Part shown: positions 8,125 to 40,761 of the stretch, piece after piece
How positions within the stretch are numbered: position 1 is the stretch's first letter
How the letters are laid out: the number at the start of each line of letters is the position of its first letter
IMG/VR virus record: IMGVR_UViG_3300036760_000522
Location: 186,001-250,000 of that record
Reading direction: 5' to 3' (one strand)
DNA length: 64,000 nucleotides
The notes under the pieces: model-generated
Told to the model about the DNA's origin: nothing
What the model saw: the letters and a program-made list of their open reading frames with translations, nothing else
Databases searched by the model: none
Program-made: the position numbers and the translations under genes

Positions 8125-8436
8125 GTGACCGTCCGTCGAATTGTCTCTCGCTACAAAGAAGGGATCATCCCGGCTTCTTACTTCAAGTCGGGCACAATAG
8201 TTCTCTACGGCAAGTACAAAAATCACCGCGGGAGAGTTGCGGGCTTTGGTCAAGACAAGTGGGGAAATCCGACGATTGAAATCGAACCCATTCCCAAAGG
8301 GCGCAAGCAAAACAAGGTCATCGGGCTCTACAGGATCTGGCGGGCGGATGTAAAAGAAAAAGCTCTGGCCGCTGTTCGCAAGACCGTAGCTCAACGCATT
8401 GTTGAACGACACCGCCAAGCAAATGGGACGTCCTAG
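8125..8436 (+). CDS. Small basic protein with KOW/SH3-like core; candidate internal virion protein
   Basis: GTIVLYGKYKNHRGRV core; N-terminal RRIVSRYKEG and C-terminal QRIVERHRQA leader-like motifs. Confidence 0.7.
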   Translation: MTVRRIVSRYKEGIIPASYFKSGTIVLYGKYKNHRGRVAGFGQDKWGNPTIEIEPIPKGRKQNKVIGLYRIWRADVKEKALAAVRKTVAQRIVERHRQANGTS

Positions 8437-8456
8437 TCATTGGTGTTTCAGTATCC

Positions 8457-9515
8457 GTGAAAGCACCGTTCCCGTACTTCGGCGGCAAAAGCCGGGTCGC
8501 TCAGGCTGTCTGGAAGGCGTTCGGAGAAAACGTACCGAACTACATAGAACCGTTCTGCGGGTCCTGTGCAGTGCTTCTTGCTCGCCCCGGTGGGCCCGGA
8601 AAGATTGAAACTGTCAACGACGGTTGTTCCTACATTTGCAATTTCTGGAGATCAATCAAACACAACCCACAAAAAACTGCCGAGTGGTGCGACTGGCCTG
8701 TGTCCGAACTCGATTTGCATGCACGTCACGCATGGCTCATCAAGCAGTCGATCGATCTCCGCGAGAAGCTCCGAGCTGATCCCGACTACCACGACGCCAA
8801 AATCGCAGGATGGTGGGTCTGGGGGATCTGCCAATGGATCGGAGGGGGTTGGTGCAAAACCCCCTACCAACAAAGGCCGCACCTACATGATGGCGACCGA
8901 GGTGTGAACGCGGCAGAAAAACAGCTGAAGCAACAAATCCCTGGGATCCACGCTTCCGGTGTGCACAGCTTTGGAACACGTCTCCCAGCTATCGGCAACG
9001 ATCGGGCGCTCAATGGCCTGACTGCATCACCGGCACTCGAATGGTTTCAAATGCTCTCACAACGCCTCAGGAGAGTTCGATTGGTCCACGGCGACTGGAC
9101 CAGGGTACTCGGGTCTTCGACGCTTGGGAAGGGCAGGAACGTCGGAGGAAGACGGCCTACAGCTGTTTTTCTCGACGCCCCTTACGACGACGAGTTACGG
9201 GACCCTGGACTCTACACTGAGGATACAAAAAACCTCTCAGTGAAAGTCCGCATTTGGGCCCTTGAGCACGGTGATGATCCAGACCTCAGGATCGCACTTT
9301 GTGGGCTTGCGTCGGAGCACGACGGCCACATGCCGGCGACTTGGCGTGTCCATCGTTGGACGGGGGCTTCCGGCTACTCACGTGGAAAAAACCGAAGTCG
9401 TACACGCCACGAAGAAACAATTTGGTTCAGTCCGCACTGCCTCCATGCCGAAATGGACGAAACACTTTCGGCGCTCCACAACTTCGATTCAATTTCAGAA
9501 GCCTCTGATTCGTAG
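8457..9515 (+). CDS. DNA adenine methyltransferase (D12/Dam-like)
   Basis: PFPYFGGKSR, YIEPFCGSCAV (motif I), VND and FLDAPY (DPPY variant). Confidence 0.85.
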   Translation: MKAPFPYFGGKSRVAQAVWKAFGENVPNYIEPFCGSCAVLLARPGGPGKIETVNDGCSYICNFWRSIKHNPQKTAEWCDWPVSELDLHARHAWLIKQSIDLREKLRADPDYHDAKIAGWWVWGICQWIGGGWCKTPYQQRPHLHDGDRGVNAAEKQLKQQIPGIHASGVHSFGTRLPAIGNDRALNGLTASPALEWFQMLSQRLRRVRLVHGDWTRVLGSSTLGKGRNVGGRRPTAVFLDAPYDDELRDPGLYTEDTKNLSVKVRIWALEHGDDPDLRIALCGLASEHDGHMPATWRVHRWTGASGYSRGKNRSRTRHEETIWFSPHCLHAEMDETLSALHNFDSISEASDS

Positions 9516-9523
9516 GTACTAAC

Positions 9524-10083: not shown

Positions 10084-10085
10084 AT

Positions 10086-10781: not shown

Positions 10782-10811
10782 TGGACGGCCCGCATAAAAT
10801 CACAAACTGTG

Positions 10812-10845
10812 AAACCCATCTGGTTGTGGAGAACCAGATGGGTTT
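10812..10845. terminator. Perfect 14-bp inverted repeat, probable intrinsic terminator
   Basis: AAACCCATCTGGTT-gtggag-AACCAGATGGGTTT in the intergenic gap. Confidence 0.6.
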
Positions 10846-10891
10846 GTTGTTACGCCAACAAAACTTGGAGGGTGGGTGCCGAAAGTCCCGA

Positions 10892-11380
10892 TCAGGTAAC
10901 TCGCGCTCTGTAGGTGATTCGGAGCTTGTCTGCCGTAGTCTTGTTTACTGCCGTGAACGTCGACCGAGACAAAGCCGAACCACCAGGGCTCGTGTTCTGG
11001 TTCAACACAACAACCTCACGGATGTTGGTCGCCGACTTCGTACCGCCGCCAGACGGATACGAGATCACCCACTGGAACGTTCTGGTGGCCGCCAGAAGGG
11101 TTTTGCTGTCGACGGTATTCAACGTACCGGTCACAGGTGTAACCACGTTGGTCTGACCGCTGTTGGCAGCAACGCCCGACGTTCCGATCCTCATCTGATC
11201 GAAGTCGTTGGTATTGAGGCCTGTGGCCTGGCGCCAGATTTGGCGCTTGCCTGTGTTGACGACCAAGTTCAACGCGGTCCGGCGTTGAACGACCTTTGGC
11301 CCGTGCTTTCCAGAACGAATGACTTCAACTGTGAAGATCCCGCGGGCCGTCAGGGTCTCCGTTGCTTCGATGGGCTGCAT
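10892..11380 (-). CDS. Thr-rich tail-collar/fibre subunit-like protein (162 aa)
   Basis: Start reassigned to ATG 11380 (GGAGG SD upstream); NLVVNTG and IREVVVLN...SRSTFTAVNKT...LRITY resemble tail-collar fibre domains. Confidence 0.65.
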   Translation of the reverse strand: MQPIEATETLTARGIFTVEVIRSGKHGPKVVQRRTALNLVVNTGKRQIWRQATGLNTNDFDQMRIGTSGVAANSGQTNVVTPVTGTLNTVDSKTLLAATRTFQWVISYPSGGGTKSATNIREVVVLNQNTSPGGSALSRSTFTAVNKTTADKLRITYRARVT

Positions 11381-13223
11381 TGAGTGTTTCCTCCAACAGT
11401 TTGATATTGGCTTGCGCCTCCTCGAACGCCACGGATTCGGCATCGTCTGGAAGCAGCTCTAACACTCTGCGAGCGTAATAAAGACTTTCGTCGAGCTTCC
11501 CCAATTCAGCAAAAACAGTGGTCAGCCGCTGGCACGGCAGCCAGGTATAGCTAGCCATGTCGATCCACCAGATTGTGAAGGGTGGTTGCCCTATCGTGGT
11601 CGAAGCGTAGAGGTAGAAAGAAAGGGCTTCCTCGTAACGCTCAGCAATGTAAGCCAAATCTCCGAGACGTAGCCAATGCTCAGTCCGGCTCCAATCGTCT
11701 TCAGTGGCACGAATCAACACCTCTCGGGCCTTCCCCCATTGCTGTTCCGCGGTGTAAAGCTTCGCAAGCACAAGTCGTGTGTGATACCTGAGAGGCCCAT
11801 TCTTGGGAGGCAACGACAAGAACTCTTCAAGTCGTGCAATCGCACGCTTCGGGTCGTGTTCGCGCCACTCAGCTCCCAAATAGTGTAGCGAGTTTTCGTT
11901 GCGATTCGTGATCCAGTCATCCATCAGTGATTTGCGGTTCTGGACTTTCCTCTGCTTCTGTCGTGCCAGCTCACGGTCCTTTGCTCGTTCGTGTAAAGTT
12001 TGAACCTGTGGAAGTGTGATCGCCAAGTAGTCCGGCGGATAGTCCAACGTATTGTGTGTACCACGTGTGTAGCGAATCTTCGGGTCATTACGGCAGAGCC
12101 AAGGAAACACCCACCGTTGACCTGTACCTGTACGAAAAACAACGCCAACTTTCGCGCCCTTCGGCATCTGATCAAGACCGAGCAATGCTTCGAAACCTGA
12201 AATCAGACGCTCATGACCTTCCGTCATGAAAATCCAGTCAGACGTGCAATGGTCCAGGCACTGATTGCGGACCCACGCAAAATGGATCTGCTTTTGGATT
12301 TTCTCCTCGTCAGAAACTATCTCACCCAGTTCAATGAGATCCATCTTCGGCGGACCTGAAGGCTGATCCAAATCAAATACGACATCCGCGTACTTCTCAG
12401 CAATCTCTCGCGTGTTGTCGACAGTTCTCGGATCGATTCCGATCACCATCTCATCAGCGACTCCGCGAAAGCTCGCAAGCGTTGCTTCAAGGTCCTCAGC
12501 CTCGTCACGGACAGGCATCGTCACAGACAATGTGAACGACTTAGGGAAACCGCAGACCGCCAACAAATACGGGCCGAGTACCTCGATCCGCACATCTTTG
12601 AAGTATTGTGCCAAGTCACGCTTGAAGCTCATGGCATTGTATTTCACTGTGTGCTGAGGTTCTTCATCAGGACCCAGACGATCATTCGGTACCGAGAGTA
12701 ACGCTCGTCCCTCTTGAGCCGCCAACTTGAAAATCAAAGCCCGCGTCTCAGCAGACATGTGTTCGACGAACTCTGTCGCTACTACTATTGCTGGGGACTC
12801 TTCGTGAATCAGGTCACCGTTGGTTCCAACTAAGGCACGATGCGACAGCGCACGACGTATTTCACTTTCCTGATTCAAATCCGCGACTACCGTCTCGAGG
12901 TCTTTTTCCTTCGCTTGTTGCAAAGCCTCCGTGCTGTGGTCAACAACCAGGACATTGGCCTTACGGGTGTCTCTGAGACGCGCTCCCAATACCCCAGTAC
13001 CTCCACCGAGATCTACGACACGGGCATGGTACGGGAGAATGCGTTCAATCCTCGTGTACACTTGGCTCAACGCTTGTTTACGCCATTCCTCTTGATCCTT
13101 GTCTTTCCAAAGACGATTCCAAAGATCCGGCGAGTTCGCCAGACGCGCCTGACGCTCTGCCATAGCTGCATCCAAGGCAGCCCTGTCCGCCGTGACCGTA
13201 CCGGTCACATCTGAGGTATCCAT
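11325..13223 (-). CDS. SAM-methyltransferase + GT2 glycosyltransferase + TPR fusion
   Basis: VVDLGGGTG and TEFVEH (class I MTase); LSVTMPVRDEAEDL...FAWVRN...DWIF (GT2); C-terminal TPR-like helices; AAGGAG SD. Confidence 0.85.
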   Translation of the reverse strand: MDTSDVTGTVTADRAALDAAMAERQARLANSPDLWNRLWKDKDQEEWRKQALSQVYTRIERILPYHARVVDLGGGTGVLGARLRDTRKANVLVVDHSTEALQQAKEKDLETVVADLNQESEIRRALSHRALVGTNGDLIHEESPAIVVATEFVEHMSAETRALIFKLAAQEGRALLSVPNDRLGPDEEPQHTVKYNAMSFKRDLAQYFKDVRIEVLGPYLLAVCGFPKSFTLSVTMPVRDEAEDLEATLASFRGVADEMVIGIDPRTVDNTREIAEKYADVVFDLDQPSGPPKMDLIELGEIVSDEEKIQKQIHFAWVRNQCLDHCTSDWIFMTEGHERLISGFEALLGLDQMPKGAKVGVVFRTGTGQRWVFPWLCRNDPKIRYTRGTHNTLDYPPDYLAITLPQVQTLHERAKDRELARQKQRKVQNRKSLMDDWITNRNENSLHYLGAEWREHDPKRAIARLEEFLSLPPKNGPLRYHTRLVLAKLYTAEQQWGKAREVLIRATEDDWSRTEHWLRLGDLAYIAERYEEALSFYLYASTTIGQPPFTIWWIDMASYTWLPCQRLTTVFAELGKLDESLYYARRVLELLPDDAESVAFEEAQANIKLLEETLNAAHRSNGDPDGPRDLHS

Positions 13224-13268
13224 GTATTCTCCTTTGCCGTGCTCTCTAGAACACCGGCTGAACAGTCG

Positions 13269-14093
13269 TCAGCGGTCTTCGCGCCGACGTGGAGGTGTGG
13301 GATTGACGACAAAATGCTCAATCGTCTCAGGTTGCGTTCGCGGGATCACTTGCGTTCGCGCAGGGGCTGCATTTGTGAATGCCGGGGGTGGTCGTCGCTT
13401 GACCAGGATCGCAGTCAAATCAGATTCGCCTGTAAGCGTCGCTGACAAGATCCCATTGACCCACGAATACGTCTCGTCCGAGGTCGTGAACACGTCGAGC
13501 ACTGGAGCCCGATCATAGGCAGCTGCTGTACTTGTTTCGTCTGACGCAGCAACTGAGTCTTGGGGAAAGACGTCTTTGGCAAGACCTGCGGCCAAAGACT
13601 CAGCGACAGTAATCGTGTCTGAAAGTGTCAACGCGACGTCGATCGCGTAAGCCACTGAATCCGCCAACAACGCAGAATCCGAAACAACGCGCCCTAGCTC
13701 TGTCGCCGCCGAAACAGTGTCGGTAGTCGACATGTTGTCTGTCGACGTACTTTCCTGAACGAGTCCTGCTGTGATGCTGTCGGCAACAACTGCTGCATCC
13801 CCTAACGTGTATTGGTACTCTGCGGCAAGGGCGACTAGGTCTGGGTCCAAAGACAGTACATCATCTGAGGATCTGCCGTACGCCAGGCTTCCTGCTGCGG
13901 TATCCGGATCCAAAGAAGCTGTGTCGCCGAAAACACGCTCGTAGCTCAAGTCATCCAACAATGTATCGGTTGACGTATCCTCATCTTCCGAAGGCTGGCG
14001 GTCAAACATCGATGTACCTGTCGACAACAAATCGAACGCGGGTTCGTCGAGAACGCCAACAAGTTCGTCCGAAGTCACATCAAAAAGTGCCAT
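13269..14093 (-). CDS. Acidic repeat structural protein (same ~20-aa D-x5-D repeat as the giant protein)
   Basis: GDAAVVADS, TDNMSTTDT, SDSALLADS, SDTITVAES and others; Pro/Arg-rich tail. Confidence 0.8.
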   Translation of the reverse strand: MALFDVTSDELVGVLDEPAFDLLSTGTSMFDRQPSEDEDTSTDTLLDDLSYERVFGDTASLDPDTAAGSLAYGRSSDDVLSLDPDLVALAAEYQYTLGDAAVVADSITAGLVQESTSTDNMSTTDTVSAATELGRVVSDSALLADSVAYAIDVALTLSDTITVAESLAAGLAKDVFPQDSVAASDETSTAAAYDRAPVLDVFTTSDETYSWVNGILSATLTGESDLTAILVKRRPPPAFTNAAPARTQVIPRTQPETIEHFVVNPTPPRRREDR

Positions 14094-14101
14094 AGTTCAC
14101 C

Positions 14102-14491
14102 TCACACACAAAAACTGGAACGCAAACCTTGTTCGACAAAGCTCGGCAAGTTCACAACATCGAACCCCAGTGTTATCCGTTGCGACGGAGATGGGGCAAA
14201 AGCAAAATCGAGGACCCAACGGCCAAGCGACGAAGGAAAAAAGCGGATGCCGTAGCTTGACGAAGGCATCTCCGCCCAGTAAACCGAACCTGCGACGATC
14301 AAGCCGTCCGCAACACCGACACCGTCGACCAGGGTCCAACCAACCGCCTGGTTGTTGACCGTCAATGTGAATCCAATGCTCGCCGGCAAGAGACCGGTGA
14401 CTGGATTGAAGAAGTCCGAATTGAAGATATCAACCTGATCGAAGACGACCTGGTTGATTTGTACCGACCGATTGCGAAACGTCGCAGCCAT
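14102..14491 (-). CDS. Hypothetical beta-rich structural protein
   Basis: 129-aa ORF tightly packed in the operon. Confidence 0.7.
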   Translation of the reverse strand: MAATFRNRSVQINQVVFDQVDIFNSDFFNPVTGLLPASIGFTLTVNNQAVGWTLVDGVGVADGLIVAGSVYWAEMPSSSYGIRFFPSSLGRWVLDFAFAPSPSQRITLGFDVVNLPSFVEQGLRSSFCV

Positions 14492-22351: not shown

Positions 22352-22407
22352 TTTGGATCTCCTTCTATTTGTTTTTTTGGCGGATCGTTCAAGATCCGTA
22401 GAGTGTC

Positions 22408-23034
22408 TCAGTGCCCGTGTCCGAATGCCGTTTGGTACTTGGGCTTTCCGTCCCACTTGCTGGCAGAGTGTCCATCGATGGTGAATGACTGCCCCGACGG
22501 ACGGACTCGTTTGGTCGGACCCGTGAACTTGCCAGGAACGGCTACTACATAGTCAGTAGCCTCGTGCCCGCCTGTGGTTTTCTCTGCGATCTTTCGAACA
22601 AGGAGTACCTTGCCTCGAACCTCGACCACTTCATAGAAGTCGATGTTTGTCTGATCGTAGCCCCAACTCGTGTAGTAGATATCGCCAACGTCGGCATCGT
22701 GTTTGAACTCACGCCGCTCCTGTTGACGGTCCTCTTTCATCTTGAGCCGGGTTCTCTGGCCCGCAATTGTTTCTTCAATCTTCCGAGTCCGATCGGCCTC
22801 GCTGAGGAAACGGTAATTCCAGAGTGGCTTGTTGGCTTTGCCGGAGAAAGCGATCCCGTACGGCTTACTATTCGACTCCCAAGTCCAAATCGCGAGATCT
22901 GTACCCTCAGGGGTGATGGGATCCTTATCTCGTACCTCGGGCGGAAGATGAAACGACCGAGGTACGTGAAATCGACCCGGGAGGCCTGCCTCACGAAATC
23001 GGGCGACTACGTTCGAGATGATGACGGAATCCAC
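22408..23034 (-). CDS. SWGYDQTN-motif protein with an N-terminal VVARFREA leader
   Basis: VGDIYYTSWGYDQTNIDFYEVV; probable leaderless GTG start at 23034, 14 nt after the late-promoter motif. Confidence 0.75.
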   Translation of the reverse strand: MDSVIISNVVARFREAGLPGRFHVPRSFHLPPEVRDKDPITPEGTDLAIWTWESNSKPYGIAFSGKANKPLWNYRFLSEADRTRKIEETIAGQRTRLKMKEDRQQERREFKHDADVGDIYYTSWGYDQTNIDFYEVVEVRGKVLLVRKIAEKTTGGHEATDYVVAVPGKFTGPTKRVRPSGQSFTIDGHSASKWDGKPKYQTAFGHGH

Positions 23035-23057
23035 ATACACACAAACTGACAAAAGCA

Positions 23058-23687
23058 TTAGAGTGAGGAGGCGATCACTGTGTGCAAGGACTCATCGACA
23101 AAACGCCGCTTCGCTTGCGCATAGCGGCCCCAAAGAACGAAGACGACGGGTCGGCCAAGAGCATTGATGGCTTGAAGGGTCGCGTCTGTAAACGTTTCCC
23201 AGCCGTGGTCTCGGTGCGAACCAGGCTCACTGTCACGAACTGTCAGCACCGAATTGAGAAGCAAGATCCCTTGGCGAGCCCACCCCCACAAGGAGCCGTT
23301 CTGTCTAGTAACTCCAACATCCTGCTCAAGCTCGACGTAGATGTTCTGTAGGCTCGGTGGTGAGGCGTAACCGTGGGGCACGGAGAAGCAGAGGCCGTGA
23401 GCCTGTCCGAGCTTGTGATAGGGGTCCTGCCCCAAGATCACCACGCGGACGTCTTCGAGATGTGCCGCCTTGTAGGCGTTGAATATTTTGTGAGTAGGTG
23501 GATAGACAGGTAGCTGCTTCCGTTCGCTGCGTACGAAAGCAACCAACTCACGGAAGTACGCCTTTCTCGCCTCAGTACGAAAGAGTTCCTCCCATGCACC
23601 CCACAAGTTGTTCGTGTCCGCCACTCCTGTGAGCGAACACTGCACAAACGAAAGAGCCAAGAACCCGTAGGCTCCTGGCTCTTTCAA
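23058..23687 (-). pseudogene. ung: Family-1 uracil-DNA glycosylase, C-terminally truncated
   Basis: VILGQDPYH, HGLCFSV, PPSLQNI, LLLNSVLTV and VFVLWG present; stops at IASSL* before the HPSPLS motif. Confidence 0.8.
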
Positions 23688-23788
23688 TCTTCAAGGAGGT
23701 GTACGTACTGACTAACAATGCAGCGGGTTCAAAAGTAGTTTCCGTCTCAGGTCCGTTTGATGGGATCGCTACCAGTGGAGGACTGTCA

Positions 23789-24157: not shown

Positions 24158-24171
24158 TCGGAAGTGTGGCC

Positions 24172-27901: not shown

Positions 27902-29071
27902 CTAACGAAAAGCGTGACTCACGTCGGGTGGGGCGTCCCACAGACCTGCGAGGTTGTCAGATCCCGTCGCCGGGAGGTCTGATCCTGGAGTGCCGCCTAT
28001 ACGGCTCACACCCGGAGGTTTTGTTCCAAGTGTGCGACTTGCGGTCTTGACCCTGGTACCCGGATCATCAGCACTGGCAGTGATGCCAAAAGCTGCTTGA
28101 GCATTCTGGGCTTCAGGTGCTGAAGCGAAGATCTGTTGCAGATCAGGGTCCACTGCCACGTCATCGACCATCATCGACGGGCCCATGTCCTGAAAGAAGC
28201 CCATGTCATCATTGGCCATCTGCGGCTGTTGTTGAACGGGTTGCTGCTGCTGCTGAGCTTGCTGCTGCGGAGGCTGTTGTTGCAGCTGCTGCACAGCTTG
28301 TTGCACCATATCTTGGAGCTGAGCTTCTAGCTGCTGCTGTGACTGTACCTGCTGTTGCTGGACTTGTTGCTGAGCCAATTGCTGCACCATCTGGTTAGCA
28401 GTGACTGTGTCCCCCTGCTGCATGGCTGCGATCGCTTTTGCAGCAAGCTTCGCACGAGCTTCCTTCTGCTGTTCCTTATCATCATCTTGCTGCTGATCCT
28501 GAGCTTGCTTGCTCTTGTCTTTGTCAGCGTCGTCTTGCTGCTGCTGATCCTGAGCTTGCTTGCTCTTGTCTTTGTCAGCGTCGTCTTGCTGCTGCTGCTG
28601 CTGATCCTGAGCTTGCTTGCTCTTGTCTTTGTCAGCGTCGTCTTGCTGCTCGTCATCAGAGGCGAGACGTCGAACGGTATCGATCAAAACGCTATCGGGT
28701 AGGTGCATGAACCCGAGGGCCTGATCCTCCAAGAGTTGTGTCGAAGCGTTCTTGAGGAGATGCTTGGAAAGCTGGAGGCAGACCTCAGCTTTCTTCTCGA
28801 GCTTCTCGTCGTCTTCTTGCTCTTCGGCGGCGGTCTTGAAAGTGTCAGGCCTGAACGCAGGCATCCCGATCTCGTTTACACGAGTGTAGCCAGTAGAGTC
28901 GTACTCGTCCTTCCACCGACTCGGTGATACATCTTCTGCAAAGTCTGAAGGCGTACCGGTCACGTATGCGTCGGCAGCGGGTTGGGCCTGCAAATTCTCA
29001 GGCCGCATCGAATCAGGATCAGCCGCCAACTTGGCAATTCTCTCGCGGTCCCATGTAGATCGTTCACGCAT
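27902..29071 (-). CDS. Scaffolding/core protein with polyQ and acidic repeats
   Basis: Position between protease and capsid genes; low complexity; many (K/R)xA motifs. Confidence 0.75.
   Translation of the reverse strand: MRERSTWDRERIAKLAADPDSMRPENLQAQPAADAYVTGTPSDFAEDVSPSRWKDEYDSTGYTRVNEIGMPAFRPDTFKTAAEEQEDDEKLEKKAEVCLQLSKHLLKNASTQLLEDQALGFMHLPDSVLIDTVRRLASDDEQQDDADKDKSKQAQDQQQQQQDDADKDKSKQAQDQQQQDDADKDKSKQAQDQQQDDDKEQQKEARAKLAAKAIAAMQQGDTVTANQMVQQLAQQQVQQQQVQSQQQLEAQLQDMVQQAVQQLQQQPPQQQAQQQQQPVQQQPQMANDDMGFFQDMGPSMMVDDVAVDPDLQQIFASAPEAQNAQAAFGITASADDPGTRVKTASRTLGTKPPGVSRIGGTPGSDLPATGSDNLAGLWDAPPDVSHAFR
28485..28650 (-). repeat. Three tandem copies of DDADKDKSKQAQD(Q)n with n = 6, 4, 3
   Basis: Near-identical DNA units differing in CAG number. 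Confidence 0.92.
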
Positions 29072-29147: not shown

Positions 29148-30566
29148 TCACGTAGTTCCTAGGTCAAAGAGCTGACCTTTCTCGATCAAAGCTTTTTGCT
29201 CCGCCGCTGTGAGCACATGACCCAAAACCCTCTGACAAACCGCTAAAAATGCGGTATTTCCGCCATGTCGACGTGGACCTCCCACCTCAAGAACGGTTCG
29301 GTAAACCCGATCAGTCCCCGCCTGCTTGATTCGACCCATTTGGTCCAAAACCCTAGATATTACAAGTACTTCCGCTCCTGACAAAGATTTGTTGTTCGCA
29401 ACACGACGCCAACCACCAAGTCGATGCAAGACAAAACCTGTCAAGATTCGTTGCACACAGTCCGGATTCCGTATTCGAGCAGACAAGTAGCGCTCGACTG
29501 ATCTGAACTCGGGGATCTTAGAAGCTTCGTGTGTGAGGCCTCCATTCGTGTCATCTCGCAGAGTTGAACGAGGTGGAACAGGCCCGTTCAAGTCACTTCG
29601 AACCTTCTCCAAAGCCTTCTGCCGAATCAATTTAGCGACCTCATCAACAGCGGTATCAATATCGCTCGGGGAGCCAGAAGGCGTCACCTCGTTTGACGGA
29701 TCAACGAAGGGGTTCTGATCTTGTGCTGCTTTAAGCGAAGCACCAAGAGTCGCCGTTGGTGGACGTAAAGGCAAAACTTGGTTGAGCTGTGATGCGGCAG
29801 CTTCGCCTGGAAAAAGGTTACGAACAACTGCACCCTTGAATGCCGGATTCGCAACCCAAGATGCCTCGATGAATTTTACGCTGTCATTTTCTGAGGCGTT
29901 GCCACACAACTCTGCCACTTTGTGTGTCTTCCCAAAAGCGTCTTTGAACGTGTTTCCCTTCGCGTATTTTATGTGGCTGCAAAGCTCTGTGTCGTCAGTG
30001 GCCACGTTTCCGCAGAACGAACACTGGCTGTAGAGAATTGAACAACCCATGCTGAGAGAATTGATCTTCCCTGACTCGATCCCAGCAATCAAAGCTCGGT
30101 GCTTCCGATCAGTCGCCACCAAAATGTCAATGTAGACACTCGGGCCCGTGTCCCGGGCCACAGCGTCAATGATCCGTCCCTTGGAGAGCTCCTTGACCTG
30201 TAGGTGCTCCATGAAATTGTTGGCACCAATGAACGTACGATACGTTGCCAACAACAACGGACGGGACCACGCGTCGTTGTTGTTATTTATAAAACGAGAC
30301 GTCTCCGACGTGATGTAGTAATCAAGGAAACGCCGGTTGACTTCAAAGCTGCCTTGTAAGTGACGACCCAGTGGACCTGGACCATTTTCGGTATCCACTG
30401 ACGCCATGATCGTGGCGTGACTCAACAAGTACTGTGCCGGATCGTATTTCTGTAACACAGTGCTCTGTGTAGCAACCTTGCGCCCAGCGGTGACATGACG
30501 CTGCCAAGCATCAACTGAAGCCAAAGGCTCCGCGACTACTGCGTTGGCGTACTTAAGAAAGGCCAT
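29148..30566 (-). CDS. Prohead (maturation) protease with zinc-finger insertion
   Basis: NNNDAW, FMEH...SKGRIIDA, SLSMGC...CSFCG...CSH, FIEASWVANPAF. Confidence 0.8.
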   Translation of the reverse strand: MAFLKYANAVVAEPLASVDAWQRHVTAGRKVATQSTVLQKYDPAQYLLSHATIMASVDTENGPGPLGRHLQGSFEVNRRFLDYYITSETSRFINNNNDAWSRPLLLATYRTFIGANNFMEHLQVKELSKGRIIDAVARDTGPSVYIDILVATDRKHRALIAGIESGKINSLSMGCSILYSQCSFCGNVATDDTELCSHIKYAKGNTFKDAFGKTHKVAELCGNASENDSVKFIEASWVANPAFKGAVVRNLFPGEAAASQLNQVLPLRPPTATLGASLKAAQDQNPFVDPSNEVTPSGSPSDIDTAVDEVAKLIRQKALEKVRSDLNGPVPPRSTLRDDTNGGLTHEASKIPEFRSVERYLSARIRNPDCVQRILTGFVLHRLGGWRRVANNKSLSGAEVLVISRVLDQMGRIKQAGTDRVYRTVLEVGGPRRHGGNTAFLAVCQRVLGHVLTAAEQKALIEKGQLFDLGTT

Positions 30567-30752: not shown

Positions 30753-31013
30753 TCAGCCTTCCAGCAATTTGATTGTCGAACGAAGTGTTTGACCGTGGCC
30801 GCTTACCAACAGCGTTTCGCAGAGATACCGAGCCGCAACGTGCCCCTTGAAGCTGTCGAGAAAGGTCTTCAAACGTTGCTTGTCATCAGTCTTGAGGATC
30901 TGTTGCAAGTCATTGAGAACCTCTGGACGGATACTGCCTGCGGTTACACACTCCTGATAGGCGTGTGCCGCTTGTAACAAGGCTTGTTTGTTCGTCATCA
31001 CACCAATCACCAC
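30753..31013 (-). CDS. Hypothetical protein
   Basis: Fills the gap; start uncertain. Confidence 0.6.
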   Translation of the reverse strand: MVIGVMTNKQALLQAAHAYQECVTAGSIRPEVLNDLQQILKTDDKQRLKTFLDSFKGHVAARYLCETLLVSGHGQTLRSTIKLLEG

Positions 31014-31674: not shown

Positions 31675-32610
31675 TCACGGTGCGAGAGCGCGCCCTGTAG
31701 ATGACTTGCCGTCCTGAACCGCCTGTGTTTGGTCGTCAGCGTAAGCCGCCATGTAGGGCTCATCAGCGTCGGTCTGTATGGGCCTCGAAGGAGAATTGAA
31801 CGTCGACATGTACGACTCGTCGGAATCGCTCTTCAAAACCTTGGCGTTCTTCAGGGTCTCAACTTGACGTTTAGCCAACGAGCCCTGTCCGTACATACCG
31901 GCTTCGACACGATCCGCGATCTTGTCCAAATGGTTGACAAGCCCCTTGGCTGTGTCAAACGGCATGCCCCAAGACGCGTGTCGCTCCTGAATTGTGTTTG
32001 CAGCTGTATCGAGGTTGCTCAAAACCGTATCGACTGCTGTCTTCTGTTCTTTCGTCATAACTGTTCCTCTCGTACTTGACTGAATTGTCAAAAGAGTATT
32101 CCCAACCCCTGGCTCAGACCGACCAGATAACTTGGCAAGCAAGCGGTTGTAGACCATGGGATCCAGGTCCGTGGTGGTCGTAGGCCCGGCACCGCGTATC
32201 GCCAGATCCAAAGCTGCTCGATACTTGGTCTCAGGATCCATCAGACGCAGAAGCTCAGAATTCAAGCGTTCACGAGCAAGCCTAAGTATCAAGCTCTCAT
32301 CGTGGTCACGACGTTGCGTCCACATAGCTCCGGCCGGAGGCTTGTGATCCTTGGGATCGACGCCGTGGTAAACAGCTTCAACCAACTTCGACATCGATTT
32401 TCGGAAATCATAAGAAGATCCGCCAATCGATTTGTAGTTCTTGCTACGGTCCGGATCGTTGTCTGTATCTGGGTCCCGCTCGGGTTCAGGATCGACTTGG
32501 TTGCGCTGCCTGTCGTGCCGTGGAGGCTTGGATCGAGGGGACTCCCTGACCAGACGAGTCTCTTCGTCCTCTTCACGCTCACCGACAGTTTTAGTCGCCC
32601 ACAACTCCAC
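31675..32610 (-). CDS. Hypothetical head-module protein
   Basis: 311-aa ORF; twin C-terminal motifs SDSDESYM and TDADEPYM. Confidence 0.75.
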   Translation of the reverse strand: MELWATKTVGEREEDEETRLVRESPRSKPPRHDRQRNQVDPEPERDPDTDNDPDRSKNYKSIGGSSYDFRKSMSKLVEAVYHGVDPKDHKPPAGAMWTQRRDHDESLILRLARERLNSELLRLMDPETKYRAALDLAIRGAGPTTTTDLDPMVYNRLLAKLSGRSEPGVGNTLLTIQSSTRGTVMTKEQKTAVDTVLSNLDTAANTIQERHASWGMPFDTAKGLVNHLDKIADRVEAGMYGQGSLAKRQVETLKNAKVLKSDSDESYMSTFNSPSRPIQTDADEPYMAAYADDQTQAVQDGKSSTGRALAP

Positions 32611-33727: not shown

Positions 33728-35565
33728 CCGAACCGACCTTCTTCCTGTTGTTGGGCTTCATCTTTGTGATTCATCTCGAGCTTCAGGTACTTGGAAATAC
33801 GTTCCAAGACATCCGTCTTGTCAACCAAGAGACGCCCCACCTCGTTGTAGAGCGAGCGCAAAACCTCATTGAATATAGCGTCGTTGACAGTGAAAAGGTC
33901 ACGTTCGATTTTGGACTTTGTATCACTCGGGTCGATATTCAACGTCTCAAGAATGAGGTCGATTGAGATCGATCCCTTCGAGTACAGATTGTACAGATCG
34001 TTGAATGTATCTTGGCTGTCTCTCAGCGGCAAGCGTGTGAAAGACAGCTTCGGATGCAACACGACTTCCTGTCCCCACTCGTCCTCCTCGATGAACCCCA
34101 TACGTCTTGCTATCGGGCGGAAAAGGTACTCCTCGACGTACTCCTGCAAGATCTCCCGAAGATGCAAGTAACGTTGATTGATGACCTCAAGCTTGAGACG
34201 GTCACCGGAGTACAAAGACTCCCCAGACATCAAACTTTCCGTCACGCCGAGACCTGCCAAGATTCTACGTTGGACTTGCTCATACTCCGCTGACAAATCC
34301 AGGAGACGATCTCGGGCCCCCATCTCCTCCCAGTGAACTTCATAGTTGGCGACAATCGAGTAGTCAGGATCGACAAGCGCCAGATCCACCTGCTCACGCA
34401 ACGCGTCAGTATCGATATCGCTCAACCCTTCGGCCCACACGATGCGCTTAGGAGTCATTGCCCGAGACGCGATGGACGTCTGAGCCTGCCGAAGTTTATC
34501 AACGTAGATCAGCGACCTAAGGCATCTCCCCAATATAGGTTGACCTATACTGATGTCAGCGTCTTTGCTGCCTGTCAAAATGTAACCGAACGATCCTGCG
34601 TCTGGATCGGTACCAAGGGGTATTGTCTTGCCTGCTTCGAGACATGTGCGAACTTCATTCGGAATCTGTTCGACCAATTTTTTCGCGTCTACATCTCCGG
34701 TTTTCGCACGCTCAATCATTTGACGGTCGCGCTCAGACGGAATCAACTCAATGAGAGGACGGTCACTGTAGCTGAACGTGGTGATTTTTACTTTATCAAT
34801 AGGTATTACTATCAGTCGATCCCACCCTGCATAGTGTTTCTTGTAGTAAGCTGATTCGGCCGCGTCCGTCTCGGGGGTGTCTTCCCAAATTGTCTTGTCT
34901 TGATCGACTGTAGTTCCGTCCTCACGCAAGACGGCTTCCTTGATCGTCTTCTTCGTGCGACCCAAGTCTTCCGGGACTTCAACTGAAGAGTCCTCCGCAA
35001 AAATGCACGTGACGCCGTCGAGCCAGTAATGATGTACGATCGTGATCAGTCGTTGGAACAACTTGATCTTCTTACACATCCGCTCGAAGCGAGACAGAAT
35101 GTACTTTCCGTAATTCTCCGGTGAGCTGAAACCCTCTGGTGCTCTGAGCGGTTTCGGGGCAGTCAGTCGAACTTTCGAGAGAGGAAGCTCTGTGTGGATG
35201 TCAATGGCTTGTCCGACGATCTCATCCGAGTTGTAGAAGTGCCGGAAAATCTCTCGTCGCTCACGAACGCTTTGCGGCAGCTCGAGAAAGTCCGTGGATA
35301 GCTGGGGGCTGTAGAAATTGCTCTGGGAGCTTTGCATGGTCCCACCAGCAGCACCCAAACCAATCCCCGTCCCGCCTCCAAGGCCCATGCTGCTGAGTCC
35401 GAACCCACCCAAAGCACCACTCGACTGAACACGACGAGCAAGACGCTCCTTGAACGTCAGCTGGCTACTGTACGCCCCAGACACGTAAGGCTTGGTTAAT
35501 CTGCGCGGATCTGGAACCTGAATCGCAGCGGAATACCGTCCCGGAAAATTTGAGTAAGCCATCAA
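33724..35565 (-). CDS. Portal protein
   Basis: FYNSDEIVGQAIDIHTELP, ILGRCLRSL, ILAGLGVTESLMSGE, IARRMGF; lies between terminase and head genes. Confidence 0.8.
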   Translation of the reverse strand: MMAYSNFPGRYSAAIQVPDPRRLTKPYVSGAYSSQLTFKERLARRVQSSGALGGFGLSSMGLGGGTGIGLGAAGGTMQSSQSNFYSPQLSTDFLELPQSVRERREIFRHFYNSDEIVGQAIDIHTELPLSKVRLTAPKPLRAPEGFSSPENYGKYILSRFERMCKKIKLFQRLITIVHHYWLDGVTCIFAEDSSVEVPEDLGRTKKTIKEAVLREDGTTVDQDKTIWEDTPETDAAESAYYKKHYAGWDRLIVIPIDKVKITTFSYSDRPLIELIPSERDRQMIERAKTGDVDAKKLVEQIPNEVRTCLEAGKTIPLGTDPDAGSFGYILTGSKDADISIGQPILGRCLRSLIYVDKLRQAQTSIASRAMTPKRIVWAEGLSDIDTDALREQVDLALVDPDYSIVANYEVHWEEMGARDRLLDLSAEYEQVQRRILAGLGVTESLMSGESLYSGDRLKLEVINQRYLHLREILQEYVEEYLFRPIARRMGFIEEDEWGQEVVLHPKLSFTRLPLRDSQDTFNDLYNLYSKGSISIDLILETLNIDPSDTKSKIERDLFTVNDAIFNEVLRSLYNEVGRLLVDKTDVLERISKYLKLEMNHKDEAQQQEEGRFG

Positions 35566-35984
35566 GCTTCGATTTCACCGAACAAGTCGTCTAAGGTGTC
35601 AGGCGTGGAAACAGGAGCCAAGCGGCGTGTGGGTTTCTGTTGCTTCTCTCTAGACTGCTGCTCTTTTCGCACACGGTCCTCTTCAGCCTCTGCCCTAGCG
35701 CGTTCTACAATTCTCTCCACCACACTGGTTCGACGAAGACCTTGAGCGACTGCCCCGGCAAACCTCAGGTAAGCGTTGGCAAAAATAAGGTATCCAGACG
35801 CCACAGACGATGAGGGAGACGATCTACGTGCCGTCTCCCGCAAATTCACCGACGATTGGTACACGTCGCGAGTCACACGCTCCAAATCCGCCACCAAACC
35901 CTTGTGGGTATCGTGCATCGAAAGCAACTCCCGATCAGAGTCAACTTCGGCATTGGGCGCGGTAGGTGTGGGCACGGTCGGCAT
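35562..35984 (-). CDS. Hypothetical helical protein
   Basis: 140-aa ORF. Confidence 0.7.
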   Translation of the reverse strand: MPTVPTPTAPNAEVDSDRELLSMHDTHKGLVADLERVTRDVYQSSVNLRETARRSSPSSSVASGYLIFANAYLRFAGAVAQGLRRTSVVERIVERARAEAEEDRVRKEQQSREKQQKPTRRLAPVSTPDTLDDLFGEIEA

Positions 35985-36510: not shown

Positions 36511-37032
36511 TCACATAATCGTTTGAAGGGTCAAATAGTTGGCCGTAATGACGGTTGGTGCTTGAACAACAAGGCCTGTGTAGTTTGTGTTTGGAGCTCG
36601 AGGGTCGGCTGACAAGGTCCACTCGTCTTCCACTGTCCAAAAACCACGAAGAGAGAAACGCAGCTTTGAACCTTCCACGTAGACCAAGGGGACCAAAGGG
36701 CCGCCCCCTGTACGAGAGGTGTAAGTGTACTGCTCAAAAGTTGTCGTAGCGATCAGCCAACTGCCAATGCACAAAATGACAGCGCCGTATCTAACCTGGT
36801 TGCCGACAAGCGAGATGTACTGATCCGAGGATTCATCTGATCCCCAGAGGGCAAAACCTCCGAACGAACCGTCTGAGTACGTCGTAAGAAATTCGTCTTG
36901 CGGAGAATCCTGCCACTGAAATCCTTGACCACCAGGCCATCCTCCAACCTGAGCCACAGGCGTGATCGCAACTGGATAGGCGTCGCTTCGGTGGAAAACG
37001 ACACAATCCCGAGTCCTGAAAAGTTCGGCCAT
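36511..37032 (-). CDS. Decoration-protein paralog 2 (173 aa)
   Basis: RTRDCVVF, GGWPGGQG, GFALWGSDE, SLRGFWTVEDE. Confidence 0.85.
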   Translation of the reverse strand: MAELFRTRDCVVFHRSDAYPVAITPVAQVGGWPGGQGFQWQDSPQDEFLTTYSDGSFGGFALWGSDESSDQYISLVGNQVRYGAVILCIGSWLIATTTFEQYTYTSRTGGGPLVPLVYVEGSKLRFSLRGFWTVEDEWTLSADPRAPNTNYTGLVVQAPTVITANYLTLQTIM

Positions 37033-37550
37033 TACAAAGTCGTCTGGATGGTCAAGTAGTTCTCGGTCACCGCGGTTGGTGCTTGAACAACAAGGCCTGT
37101 GTAGTTTGTGTTTGGGGCCCGTGGATCAGCCGAGAGCGTCCACTCGTCTTCCACTGTCCAAAAACCACGAAGAGAGAAACGCAAACGGTCTGAAGCGTTG
37201 TACGTCAGTGGTACAAGGGGACCTGCTGTTCGAGATGCGTAGGTGTAGCGCTCGTAAGTCGAGGTCATGATAAGCCACGACCCTACAGCCATTGTCGAAA
37301 CTCGGTAAAACGGCTGGTTACGTGTCATCGATGTGAACTGATCCGAGATCTCGTTAGAACCCCAAAGAATGAAGCCGCCCGGCTCACCATCAGAGTAGGA
37401 AACTAAAAACTCATCCCGCGTAGAAAGAACCCAACGAATCCCTTGGCCCCCAGGCCATCCTCCCGCGGCCAACGCTTCAGACACAGTGACGGGGTACTCA
37501 TCACTGCGAAACAAGATCACGCAGTCTCGTGTGCGAAATTGCTCTGACAC
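37032..37550 (-). CDS. Decoration-protein paralog 1 (172 aa)
   Basis: RTRDCVIL, GGWPGGQG, GFILWGSNE, SLRGFWTVEDE. Confidence 0.85.
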   Translation of the reverse strand: MSEQFRTRDCVILFRSDEYPVTVSEALAAGGWPGGQGIRWVLSTRDEFLVSYSDGEPGGFILWGSNEISDQFTSMTRNQPFYRVSTMAVGSWLIMTSTYERYTYASRTAGPLVPLTYNASDRLRFSLRGFWTVEDEWTLSADPRAPNTNYTGLVVQAPTAVTENYLTIQTTL

Positions 37551-37553
37551 GTC

Positions 37554-37802
37554 TCAGTCCTTGGGTGTTCGAGTACGTGTTGGCATCTTGCTCCACGCAG
37601 CTATTACTTTTTCCAACAAGCTGAGCTGTAACAGGGATCCACTAACCAGCGCCTCCCAGTTTCCTCGACACCTCCGAAACACATTTCGAATCGCAGCAAA
37701 GTCCTGTGGAGAAGTCACCAGGTCTTCTCCACATAAGTGGTCCACGAACTGACGAATCACACGATTCGCAAAGATCACGTCTGGTATCTCAACAGAATCC
37801 AT
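37554..37802 (-). CDS. Hypothetical protein
   Basis: 82-aa ORF; GAGG SD. Confidence 0.7.
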   Translation of the reverse strand: MDSVEIPDVIFANRVIRQFVDHLCGEDLVTSPQDFAAIRNVFRRCRGNWEALVSGSLLQLSLLEKVIAAWSKMPTRTRTPKD

Positions 37803-37808: not shown

Positions 37809-39794
37809 TCAGAATCTGGCACGTCGAGGAACGAACCGCGGCGAAACCCCGTGGCGACGTGCCCGCATCATCTGGTATCGACGAGGCGTCATAGTTGTAT
37901 AGGTAGGGTCTCGCGAAAACAATGAGCCGTTGGCCGCATGTTTCTGATTTGCGAGAAACTCTGAAGAGAGGGACACAGCTCGTACGTATGCATCAGCAGA
38001 GTCGTCGAAAGAACCGTGCTTCTGAGGTGCTTGGACATTCACCATATACTTCGTCTTCAAAGTAGCCTGCAAAGCAAACAACTCCAGGATGAAATCCGAG
38101 TGCCGCTCTCCGTCACGAGCCCGCTCTGGAATAGGGAAGTCGTAGAGCCGAAGTCGACCGTCGTACATCAACATCTTGGTGTTTTGAAACATCTTGCTAC
38201 GTTGATCAGGTGTGAAAAACTGTGATGTGAATTGCTTGAGACCCTTCTTGTGCAACGCCTGCTCCAGAGGCAAACCGTTCCACCGGTCGAACAAGCCAGC
38301 TGTGACGTGAAACCACGAACAAACTAGCTCAATCCACTTGGCGATCTCGTCAAAATCTAGCCGTTCCACATCCTGCAAAGACTTTGCAAACTCTGTCGAA
38401 TAGCGACCTTCCAAATGTGGGTTTAGGTCTTTCCACTGACACCCTGCACGCCAAACCTCATGATAGTCCAGGACGACGCTGTCGCGCTCCGGGTGCGTGA
38501 TACAAATCACTGTACCGTCATTGACCAAACCTACGTCTAACCCCATCTGGTGAGGTTCACGAGGACGTGCACGAGACTTAGGTCTCAAGTCACGGTCGAC
38601 GCAAGCCAACAAGTCCGGCTTGCGTTCAATCCACCCAACGCTTTGATCGGAAAACCGGGCACCGTACTCCGTCATGAACACGACGGGGTTTTTGTGGTAC
38701 TCAGTCCGAAAGTAGGCGCCCGAGACTGTGGGGTTGACTTCCCAGGTCGGGGCTTGAATCGCCAAGGTGTAAGCCGCACCAGGATCGTTACGCATCGCCA
38801 AATCGTACTGGTCGAAAAACTTCCCTGACTTTCCTAAAGGTGATGAGATCAGGATGATTCTCGATTCAACGAGGGCTTCCTGTTGTGTCACGGAATCAAC
38901 GAGTATTCGTTTTGTGACTGGATCCTTTCGTGTGTAGGCCGCAGTCGAAGGCGTCAATGCCGAGTAAATCTCTTCAGCCGATCTTCCACCCTTAGTCAAG
39001 TAATGAGCGACCTCATCCAACACGATCAATATATTACCGGGACCACGCAAACTTCGTGCAACACAAGGTTTGAACGTCACACGAATCGACGCTTTACCGG
39101 AAAACGTCGTGTACTTACCGTCACTCTCTCGAGTAGAGACCCCGTGTTTCTCGAGATCACGCGGTGTACGAAAATTCATGAACGTGAGGTTGTTGTTGGC
39201 AATGAACGGCTTGAAATATGAACATCTCCCAACATGAGTTGCCACCTCATTGAACAACAATCCGGCTTGTTCCTTGTCCGTGCCAATGGACGTCAGCTGA
39301 ATCCGACTGCCATCAATGAGTCCGTAGTAAGCTTGAGGGTCATACAAATTCAGTAGCCGATAGACCTCATAGCTTGCAAAGATCCCTGCCATGGCAGTCT
39401 TGCCAGACCGTCGACCAACAGCCAAAACCAATTCACGTCGATCATATGAGGGCTCGTTGATGTTACAGCGACCCTCATTGTACAAATAGTGGAGGTACTC
39501 CACCTCCGTGAACTCGTACAACGTACGAGTTTTGAACATGTCCGTGATGATGATCCGATCTGTCAGATCATCCGGCAAACGATCCAACAGATCGAGTCCG
39601 TAGTAGAGCTTGATGATGAATCGCTGAACCGGGTAGAGCTTCATGCCGAGTCCCCAGGAACTCTCGGCATACGTGAGCACATCAAAAATCGGTGCTATTA
39701 CGTTGTTGTCACCATCTGCCTTGGCAATATCCCGACCAGCTTGTCGAATGAGTGATGCAAGCGACCCAGCGGGAGTCTCGATATTCGCAGCCAT
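37809..39794 (-). CDS. terL: Terminase large subunit
   Basis: Walker A GRRSGKT, Walker B LIVLDE, coupling motif ISSP, nuclease GLDVG, DRWN, DDSADA. Confidence 0.92.
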   Translation of the reverse strand: MAANIETPAGSLASLIRQAGRDIAKADGDNNVIAPIFDVLTYAESSWGLGMKLYPVQRFIIKLYYGLDLLDRLPDDLTDRIIITDMFKTRTLYEFTEVEYLHYLYNEGRCNINEPSYDRRELVLAVGRRSGKTAMAGIFASYEVYRLLNLYDPQAYYGLIDGSRIQLTSIGTDKEQAGLLFNEVATHVGRCSYFKPFIANNNLTFMNFRTPRDLEKHGVSTRESDGKYTTFSGKASIRVTFKPCVARSLRGPGNILIVLDEVAHYLTKGGRSAEEIYSALTPSTAAYTRKDPVTKRILVDSVTQQEALVESRIILISSPLGKSGKFFDQYDLAMRNDPGAAYTLAIQAPTWEVNPTVSGAYFRTEYHKNPVVFMTEYGARFSDQSVGWIERKPDLLACVDRDLRPKSRARPREPHQMGLDVGLVNDGTVICITHPERDSVVLDYHEVWRAGCQWKDLNPHLEGRYSTEFAKSLQDVERLDFDEIAKWIELVCSWFHVTAGLFDRWNGLPLEQALHKKGLKQFTSQFFTPDQRSKMFQNTKMLMYDGRLRLYDFPIPERARDGERHSDFILELFALQATLKTKYMVNVQAPQKHGSFDDSADAYVRAVSLSSEFLANQKHAANGSLFSRDPTYTTMTPRRYQMMRARRHGVSPRFVPRRARF

Positions 39795-39799
39795 GGCAT

Positions 39800-40396
39800 T
39801 TAACGAGCCAGACTGTCGACGCGTTCCTCCCAGCCTACCAACCTGTTCTCCAGGGCATTGAAAAACACGTTTACCTGTTCAGGTGCCAAGGTCGCTTGTG
39901 CCGCGTCGCGGATAACGTCAATAAAGTGTGAGAACACCTTCTGGAATTTCTCTCCACGCAAGTTGATAGACCCGCCATTCATGCGTTGCAGCTCGACTTC
40001 CAATCGCATCAGCTCGCGTAACGCGATAACACGAGTTCGTGAAACCGTCGTCGAGTCGTAGCCGTTCCTGTCCAACAGCTCTCGATTGAAATGCATAGCC
40101 GAAACCTCTTCGGCTATCTCACGACGGACCGTGTACAACAAATCGAGGGTCGCCCCACCCTTGCGTTCTTCAGCGTAACGTATCAGATCGTTGTTTTTCA
40201 GATAGAGCTTGCGTTGGACGTCTACCTGCTCATTTGTAGAATCTTGATCAAGAATCTTTTTTGCCGCCGTGCGAAGACCGTGTTGTCGACGACCCCGAGC
40301 AATTGGGATGAGATCACCACCAGCCGCCGCCCGAGCAGCTTCCAAAGCCTCGGGTGTTCCAACTACGTCATTTGGCTGGTCGTCTAACGGCTTCAC
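39800..40396 (-). CDS. Probable terminase small subunit
   Basis: Helical 198-aa protein directly upstream of terL (positional inference). Confidence 0.5.
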   Translation of the reverse strand: MKPLDDQPNDVVGTPEALEAARAAAGGDLIPIARGRRQHGLRTAAKKILDQDSTNEQVDVQRKLYLKNNDLIRYAEERKGGATLDLLYTVRREIAEEVSAMHFNRELLDRNGYDSTTVSRTRVIALRELMRLEVELQRMNGGSINLRGEKFQKVFSHFIDVIRDAAQATLAPEQVNVFFNALENRLVGWEERVDSLAR

Positions 40397-40761
40397 AAAT
40401 CCTCCGTCTTGATCAAATACTGAGACAAGTTGTAAACAGAGTCGTACCCACGATCCTTTGGAACTTGTTTCTCAATCGCCCGTTCCAAATCACGCCCTGT
40501 CTCGTACAAGTTTTGTACCGCGAGGTTCTTTGGTGACGGAGAGAACACATCCTTTGGGCGTATGTCCCGACGATCGGGCTCAACAGCTTCCGGATTGTTA
40601 CCTGCCAAATCAGCCCCCTGTTCACGCTGCAAAGGGACCGTGATCCCCTTTGGTTTGTTGACAGGTTGTGTATTCTTCCGCGCACGAGAGCGTCCGCCTG
40701 GCAATTGATCCGCCAAACGTAAATACGCCTGTACAACTCTCCGTGCAGATTCCGAACTCAC
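40393..40761 (-). CDS. Small protein with RRVVQAYLRLA leader; candidate internal virion protein
   Basis: 122-aa ORF overlapping both neighbours. Confidence 0.75.
   Translation of the reverse strand: MSSESARRVVQAYLRLADQLPGGRSRARKNTQPVNKPKGITVPLQREQGADLAGNNPEAVEPDRRDIRPKDVFSPSPKNLAVQNLYETGRDLERAIEKQVPKDRGYDSVYNLSQYLIKTEDL

Follow-up and report, generated by a model that had tools for sequence, protein, structure and literature searches.

A short amphipathic peptide tag on unrelated proteins of huge uncultivated phages: a candidate signal for loading proteins into the head

In bacteriophage T4 the capsid-targeting sequence (CTS) is strictly N-terminal (the leader of IPIII is MKTYQEFIAE) and is cut after Glu by gp21, the site being (L/I)-x-E; the genes of the internal proteins lie in clusters. 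These diverse proteins share only the CTS, which brings them to the prohead scaffolding core, and they are injected with the DNA (PMC3012670, PMC5694885). Here we describe a peptide tag of about 12 residues on three genes in a window of 64,000 nucleotides (the whole stretch of DNA that was analysed), which is part of the 301,550 bp viral contig IMGVR_UViG_3300036760_000522 (JGI 3300036760, Ga0373620_0000024). The original prediction had taken the N-termini of these genes for a T4-like leader that addresses unrelated cargo proteins to the head, and all of the sequences that it quoted were found at their positions in the window.

Other systems also have to be set beside the tag. The encapsulation peptides of bacterial microcompartments (BMCs; PduP, PduD and EutC type) are short amphipathic helices that may stand at either terminus and are linker-joined and portable. 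The cargo peptides of encapsulins are extended Gly/Ser/Leu-rich motifs of the LTVGSLRR type, and the twin-arginine translocation (Tat) signal consists of RR-x-F-L-K, a hydrophobic h-region and an A-x-A site. The polyvalent proteins of phages and conjugative elements unite several effector domains in one chain, encoded next to head or type IV secretion system (T4SS) genes; such effectors are predicted to be packaged and to travel with the DNA, T4 Alt being the proven case (Iyer et al., 2017; PMC5512222). The phiKZ-like giant phage SPN3US has many head-internal proteins, including ejection proteins, the long N-terminal regions of which are thought to target the prohead (PMC5694885).

Each of the three window genes encodes a single domain, and all three proteins are basic (pI 9.3–10.9). 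Gene 1 (8125..8436, plus strand; 103 residues, pI 10.9) encodes a small β-barrel with a tag at each end; it begins MTVRRIVSRYKEG and terminates ...AQRIVERHRQANGTS, and its core is conserved among 221 homologues. Gene 2 (22408..23058, minus strand), the SWGYDQTN protein, matches only phrog_37844 (function unknown). Its open reading frame (ORF) opens at ATG 23058, overlapping the stop codon of a uracil-DNA glycosylase (UDG) gene (TAATG), and an in-frame GTG at 23034 yields MDSVIISNVVARFREAG; because the homologues begin 4–7 residues ahead of the motif, 23040 and 23034 are both plausible starts. Gene 3 (40393..40761, minus strand) encodes a basic protein of 122 residues (MSSESARRVVQAY...), begins at a GTG in a GTGA start/stop overlap with the upstream gene and lies just upstream of a 198-residue gene of the packaging/head module, which is followed by TerL. 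With the tags masked, BLASTP gave no match between any of the three proteins.

The family searches gave little on function. Genes 1 and 3 had no Pfam, PHROG or PDB sequence match, and the likeness of gene 1 to Tudor/SH3-type barrels was weak, with non-significant E-values. The fold of gene 2 had no PDB match, its structural neighbours in BFVD were all uncharacterised viral proteins, and a search for cultured relatives gave only distant matches to hypothetical proteins for it. In a function search with the three proteins, the Atlas structural neighbours LPD29, DUF7007 and DarA_C were weak (TM 0.3–0.46). A late promoter had been claimed ahead of gene 2; no sigma-70-like site was present at 22300–24300 and no 8- or 9-mer recurred upstream of genes, so this claim was abandoned.

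Within the window alone, the similarity of the three N-termini is indistinguishable from chance. The regular expression [RN][VI]V.[RA][YF], written post hoc from the three sites, matched only these sites in 20,203 residues. In an unbiased search for ungapped triples scored with BLOSUM62, the flagged triple ranked 117th–228th among N-terminal triples, and control sets of interior 25-residue windows held 146–295 triples that were equally good. Since the window alone was underpowered, the homologues of each gene, many of them metagenomic, were examined. Three family alignments were built in MAFFT without reference to the motif, and their N-terminal consensus sequences were xxRVAxRFxxAxYF (family 1), xxVVxRF-KEA (family 2) and LAxRVAARFxRxAD (family 3, in which the tag part is LAxRV(A/V)ARF). 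The N-termini of the homologues thus converge on one sequence more closely than do the copies in the window, and it is in these families that the predicted common pattern was recovered. The overall consensus is (D-P)-L-A-x-R-V-A-A-R-F-L-x-A, the modal hexamer in each of the three families is RVAARF, and flanking positions that the regular expression did not select show the same residues from family to family (L at −3, A at −2, L at +6 and A at +8). The tag was present in 64/119, 57/119 and 56/61 homologues of families 1, 2 and 3, respectively, at a median position of residue 4–6.

A position-specific scoring matrix (PSSM) was built from the homologues and run against the window proteome. The four best sites were the N-termini of gene 3 (SARRVVQAYLRLA; 40711..40749, minus strand; 18.9 bits), gene 2 (IISNVVARFREAG; 22984..23022, minus strand; 16.6 bits) and gene 1 (TVRRIVSRYKEGI; 8128..8166, plus strand; 15.1 bits), the last of which aligns with RVAxRF of its homologues, followed by the C-terminal copy in gene 1 (VAQRIVERHRQAN; 8386..8424, plus strand; 11.0 bits). 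The mean maximum score in shuffled proteomes was 10.6 bits. The C-terminal copy of gene 1, which had likewise been noted beforehand, recurs in its family, where strong C-terminal copies (for example NQLVNRVTARF) were found in 10/119 homologues. PSSMs built from single families ranked the other flagged genes 1st–6th of 19,399 positions. Third codon positions differ among the tag copies, so that selection acts on the peptide and not on the DNA, and a DNA-level signal was ruled out. The tag is real and is conserved in the homologues.

Several weaker strings were rejected because they did not exceed the shuffled expectation: LRVARIF in the capsid protein, LAARVWTKY in the clamp loader, HVAARYL in ORF 30753-31013 and ERIVERA in ORF 35562-35984. 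The interior, sub-threshold strings in the latter two ORFs (both minus strand) read KGHVAARYLCE and VVERIVERARAEA, respectively. A sub-threshold tag-like start (IFANRVIRQF) is also found in the 82-residue gene after TerL (37554..37802, minus strand), and in relatives the gene upstream of the protease encodes a conserved RVAxAFVKxA helix.

Tag copies are found at either terminus of a protein or at both, and also in tandem and between domains. In the tagged topoisomerase IB (Topo IB) it is N-terminal in the relatives L001 and L236 and forms the last residues in L049 (LAERVAARFLT-stop); both ends are tagged in gene 1, in a 449-residue protein of L089 and in a 159-residue protein of L093. A strictly N-terminal leader like that of T4 is therefore not supported. 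Orthologs also differ in carrying it: head-module proteins of 474 and 954 residues are tagged in L004, and their window orthologs (42026-43003 and 31675-32610) are not. It had been proposed beforehand that non-phage homologues of the SWGYDQTN protein be checked for the leader. Homologues of gene 2 from 32 bacterial genomes, among them those of cultured Rhizobium, Martelella, Nitrosomonas and Dyadobacter, begin directly at the folded domain and none (0/32) is tagged.

In AlphaFold2 models of genes 1 and 2 the tag is a helix detached from the fold, with a predicted local distance difference test (pLDDT) score below about 50. The model of gene 1 has an N-terminal helix (residues 4–11, pLDDT <50), a β core (25–70) and a C-terminal helix (74–100); that of gene 2 has a helix at residues 11–23 (pLDDT ∼50), a disordered linker and a folded domain from about residue 34 (pLDDT >85). 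The hydrophobic moment of the tag is 0.52–0.78, with L, V, F, L and the alanines on a hydrophobic face and the two arginines opposite. M-D-P, a helix cap, very often precedes the tag. After the tag, columns +6 to +10 (L/K, x, A, A/S) continue the helix. The (K/R)x(A/G) site that had been proposed corresponds to this continuation (F-[L/K]-x-A), and in family 1 the tag abuts the folded domain directly. From its occurrence on many families at variable positions, its absence from the bacterial homologues and its modelling as a detached helix, we conclude that the motif is a portable docking peptide; it has about 12 residues and forms an amphipathic helix. These data support the view of the original prediction that the tag sits on unrelated proteins like an address label, and further that it is not part of their folds.

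To assess its spread, IMG/VR was scanned with back-translated LAxRVAARF, LAxRVAARY and LAxRVVARF, using the reversed peptides as a control. Contig size, independent PSSM sites and ORF inspection served as discriminators. Matches on contigs of 250–530 kb numbered 13/92 for the forward patterns and 0/35 for the reversed control, in which the sole longer contig was one of 2.24 Mb. Sites of ≥18 bits that had not been selected by the patterns numbered eight in 148k residues of huge-phage loci versus none in 289k residues of control loci, and the extra sites fall on neighbouring genes of the huge-phage loci. A metagenome scan with a longer pattern yielded just one further tagged ORF. In all, 31 tagged proteins from phage contigs of 250–530 kb were grouped into 21 clusters (BLASTP, tags masked). 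Among them are Topo IB (PF01028), an ADP-ribosyltransferase (ART-PolyVal, E = 2.7e-9), a PARP-like protein (weak match), a J-domain protein (PF00226) and a 1009-residue protein with an HExxH motif. Together with the small basic proteins, this spectrum fits the host-takeover type of cargo that had been anticipated. The literature gave no match to the string RVAARF, and no description of such a tag was found.

Position and fusion connect the tag with the head module. In the window this module comprises TerL (37809-39794, 661 residues), the portal (33724-35565), the post-portal ortholog (31675..32610, minus strand; untagged here), a prohead-protease-like gene (29148..30566, minus strand), an acidic scaffold-like protein (27902..29071, minus strand) and the major head protein (26290-27174; PHROG major-head family). 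The same gene order is kept in relatives on contigs of 36 kb to 349 kb, in which gene 3 directly precedes the 198-residue gene and TerL. The tagged 474-residue gene lies two genes upstream in the module, and the post-portal protein of the relatives (950–1360 residues) has a conserved start of 60 residues followed by one to three tags, so that three members of the terminase–portal–protease module are tagged. On the 536 kb IMG/VR contig L231 a polyvalent protein of 1798 residues (2933-8329, plus strand) is encoded just upstream of the protease gene. It contains, in order, a 2H phosphoesterase (2'-5' RNA ligase-like), a PolyA_pol nucleotidyltransferase with an RNA-binding domain, a tag with the gene 1 domain (E = 1.7e-8 against gene 1), a tag with Topo IB, and the post-portal start. 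In the 512 kb relative L236 the C-terminus of Topo IB is fused to a homologue of the 82-residue post-TerL gene (2481-3527, plus strand; 42% identity, E = 1e-19). Tagged genes also lie side by side in runs of two or three. The tag is absent from RecA, the RecD2-like helicase, the clamp loader and the exonuclease in the window, and from ribonucleotide reductase (RNR), ligase and GroEL in the flanking ∼9 kb. The link to the head that had been predicted thus stands as an association by gene position and gene fusion.

The protease-like gene matches phrog_18299 (head maturation protease; E = 7e-13, residues 106–247) and gave no Pfam or PDB sequence match. The protein encoded at 27902..29071, between the protease-like and major capsid genes, has 389 residues, is Q/D-rich with a pI of 4.36, contains long Gln runs as well as repeats of the DDADKDKSKQAQDQQQQ type in tandem, and has no family match. 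Its position and composition make it a scaffold candidate, and it might be the receptor for the basic tag: the tag offers two arginines, and this protein, encoded beside the protease-like gene, is very acidic.

We propose that a clade of huge phages to which the present genome belongs attached the tag to many unrelated proteins, all of which would then bind one common receptor. This receptor would be a component of the assembling procapsid, the lead candidate being the acidic scaffold-like core protein and the alternatives the inner capsid surface or the portal. The tagged proteins would be shut into the head and delivered together with the DNA, as are the internal proteins of T4 and its Alt. 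We assign a probability of about 0.5 to this reading, in which the tag is a docking peptide for a common procapsid receptor and loads proteins into the head for delivery; the identity of the receptor, the packaging, any proteolytic trimming and the injection are what we infer. A broader proposal is possible but falls short of even odds, namely that, in an uncultivated clade of 250–530 kb phages, a single tag marks the entire set of proteins that are packaged and injected, working at either terminus and in multiple copies as a modular alternative to polyvalent fusions. Dozens of effectors would then dock non-covalently onto the scaffold or the capsid interior, including ADP-ribosyltransferases, a J-domain co-chaperone, Topo IB, a metalloprotease-like protein and small basic DNA-associated proteins.

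A number of observations weigh against capsid loading. The PSSM and cross-family tests are partly circular, as the training segments were chosen by a regular expression derived from the finding itself, and the 64 kb window holds only four rather degenerate copies. A start codon within 8–12 codons did not separate forward from reversed matches (8/92 versus 2/35); this criterion was dropped in favour of the discriminators given above because GC-rich off-frames yield long open frames. No conserved cleavage site follows the tag in the family alignments, and Glu at +7 is found in only 13/36 family 2 tags. Copies that are C-terminal, internal or multiple set the tag apart from the T4 leader, and the C-terminal and internal ones could not be removed as that leader is. 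The orthologs of the tagged head-module proteins in this phage are untagged, so that the tag is dispensable for them. Topo IB and the J-domain protein could equally act in the cytoplasm. No near relative was found among deposited phage genomes (no INPHARED match by megablast, or by tblastn with genes 1 and 3), nor any cultured relative, and the receptor is a candidate only.

The alternative that survives best, although we regard it as unlikely, is that the tag docks effectors onto an intracellular hub and not the capsid, such as host RNA polymerase, the nucleoid or phage DNA, DnaK, or a phage replication or assembly compartment. Short motifs that are independent of position and present in multiple copies are typical of hub-binding peptides, and among the cargo are enzymes that act on DNA or modify the host (Topo IB, ADP-ribosyltransferase and J-domain proteins). 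Gene 1 adjoins a Dam-type methyltransferase gene in the window, and its homologue in L001 adjoins Topo IB. A hub of this kind would leave it unexplained that the replication, recombination and nucleotide-metabolism enzymes of the phage itself are untagged, while several tagged genes lie inside the terminase–portal–protease module or are fused to its members; there is also no candidate hub at hand.

Recruitment of accessory factors to the portal–terminase motor, with no injected cargo, accounts for those positions and is nevertheless improbable. Topo IB, for example, might ease torsion while 300–500 kb of DNA is packaged; gene 3 precedes the 198-residue gene and TerL directly, L236 has Topo IB joined to the small protein encoded after TerL, and the post-portal protein is tagged. 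The tags on ART-PolyVal, the J-domain protein, the HExxH protein and many small, clustered, unrelated proteins would remain without an explanation. We consider it quite improbable that an AAA+ unfoldase or chaperonin, encoded by phage or host, recognises the tag as a signal for proteolysis at a set time or for chaperone handling. Nothing ties it to AAA+ or Cpn60 genes, and tandem, internal and both-end copies are not expected of such a signal, even though degrons such as the ClpX signals may occupy either terminus, a ClpX-like AAA+ protein is encoded in the relative L001 and Cpn60 is encoded by this phage. That the tag has no common function, being a generic arginine-containing amphipathic helix that recurs or is kept by chance, is very improbable and already disfavoured: the triple is not significant within the window and similar strings arise by chance in off-frames of GC-rich DNA and in the L079 sequence of an HK97-type capsid protein, but one hexamer is modal in three families, unselected flanks agree, the D-P cap is common, the enrichment is specific to huge-phage loci and homologues outside this group are untagged. 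Capsid loading was weighted above the first three of these explanations because of gene position, gene fusion, the type of cargo and the untagged replication proteins.

Further features of the window and its relatives were recorded. Nearly all window genes are on the minus strand, and those for replication and recombination encode a RecD2-like helicase, RecA, SbcCD-like proteins, a clamp loader and a 5'-3' exonuclease. About 9 kb past window position 64000 (L221 1-9967) contain genes for Cpn60/GroEL, two more clamp-loader subunits, both RNR subunits and an NAD-type DNA ligase, all of them untagged. A 5-hydroxymethyldeoxyuridine (5-hmdU) DNA kinase (32642-33727, minus strand; PF18723, E = 6e-96) lies between the portal and post-portal genes; the relative L004, which is syntenic, lacks it there. 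Taken with the UDG-superfamily gene (23058-23687) and ThyX (62217-63149), the kinase suggests that thymidine is hypermodified in the DNA of the virion. Two acidic tandem paralogues of 173 and 172 residues (36511-37032 and 37032-37550, minus strand), with no family match, lie between TerL and the portal and are present in three copies in L004; they may be head-internal proteins. In the 349 kb relative L003, TerL has 1121 residues (11112-14477, plus strand) and is interrupted by an intein that carries a LAGLIDADG endonuclease (PF14890 and PF14528), versus 670 residues without an intein in L004 and 661 in the window.

The capsid and UDG genes flank a 632-residue ORF (24172-26070, minus strand) that matches LAGLIDADG/HNH homing endonucleases and DNA methyltransferases in PHROG; it was probably inserted as a mobile element. 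The 2162-residue protein at 1153-7641 (minus strand), the N-terminal third of which consists of degenerate Asp/Ser/Thr-rich repeats, is probably a fibre or other large structural protein. A 220-residue protein with sigma-70 region 4 (44440-45102, minus strand; PF08281, E = 1.6e-11) is kept in relatives upstream of the packaging module and may be a transcription factor specific to the phage.

Should the tag be a signal for head loading, the proteins injected by huge uncultivated phages ahead of gene expression could be listed from sequence alone, and this injected set is where anti-defence and host-takeover factors would be expected. A capsid address tag would then have evolved independently of T4, working at either end and in several copies, the benefit of polyvalent proteins (co-delivery) would be explained without domain fusion, and a short portable peptide would be available for loading foreign proteins into large capsids. 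Even with another hub as the destination, a 12-residue motif shared by 21 or more unrelated families of phage proteins offers an unusual and well defined handle for finding that hub.

Compared with known systems, the tag resembles the CTS of T4 (IPI–III and Alt) in that diverse, fast-evolving and often small basic carriers share a short terminal peptide; the carriers cluster and include an ADP-ribosyltransferase, and the genome has a gene that is protease-like (by its phrog_18299 match) and one that is scaffold-like by composition. In three families the median position is also near the N-terminus, but C-terminal, internal, tandem and both-end copies are common. LAxRVAARFLxA has no sequence likeness to the T4 leader given above and lacks a conserved cleavage motif, and by these two features it falls outside the T4 type. 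The propeptides of SPN3US have 80–130 residues, are confined to families of paralogues and are cut at A-x-E, whereas the present tag has 12 residues and spans unrelated families. With polyvalent proteins it shares overlapping effectors (ART-PolyVal, metallopeptidase-like and DNA-acting domains) encoded beside head genes. There the effectors are covalently strung, whereas here they are mostly separate proteins, each with its own tag; only the 1798-residue protein of L231, with four Pfam domains and the gene 1 domain, fits the polyvalent definition, and the three window genes do not.

Two further signals were ruled out by their form. A Tat signal peptide is incompatible with arginines that are four apart and are not followed by a hydrophobic stretch (gene 3: DQLPGGRSRARKN). 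Encapsulin cargo-loading peptides are likewise short terminal peptides that bind the interior of an HK97-fold shell, and the capsid here belongs to a PHROG major-head family; the tag is helical with arginines, however, and the shell gene is that of a phage major head protein in a terminase–portal module. BMC encapsulation peptides share the terminal amphipathic helix with a linker (in gene 2, the modelled helix and disordered linker) and a similar hydrophobic spacing. They belong to a shell of BMC hexamers and a different biology, and the conserved arginine pair is specific to the present tag; no BMC family was found among the ∼25 window proteins scanned with Pfam, and membership was ruled out by shell type. 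The closest system is, in function, the T4 capsid-targeting sequence and, in form, the terminal amphipathic encapsulation peptides of BMCs.

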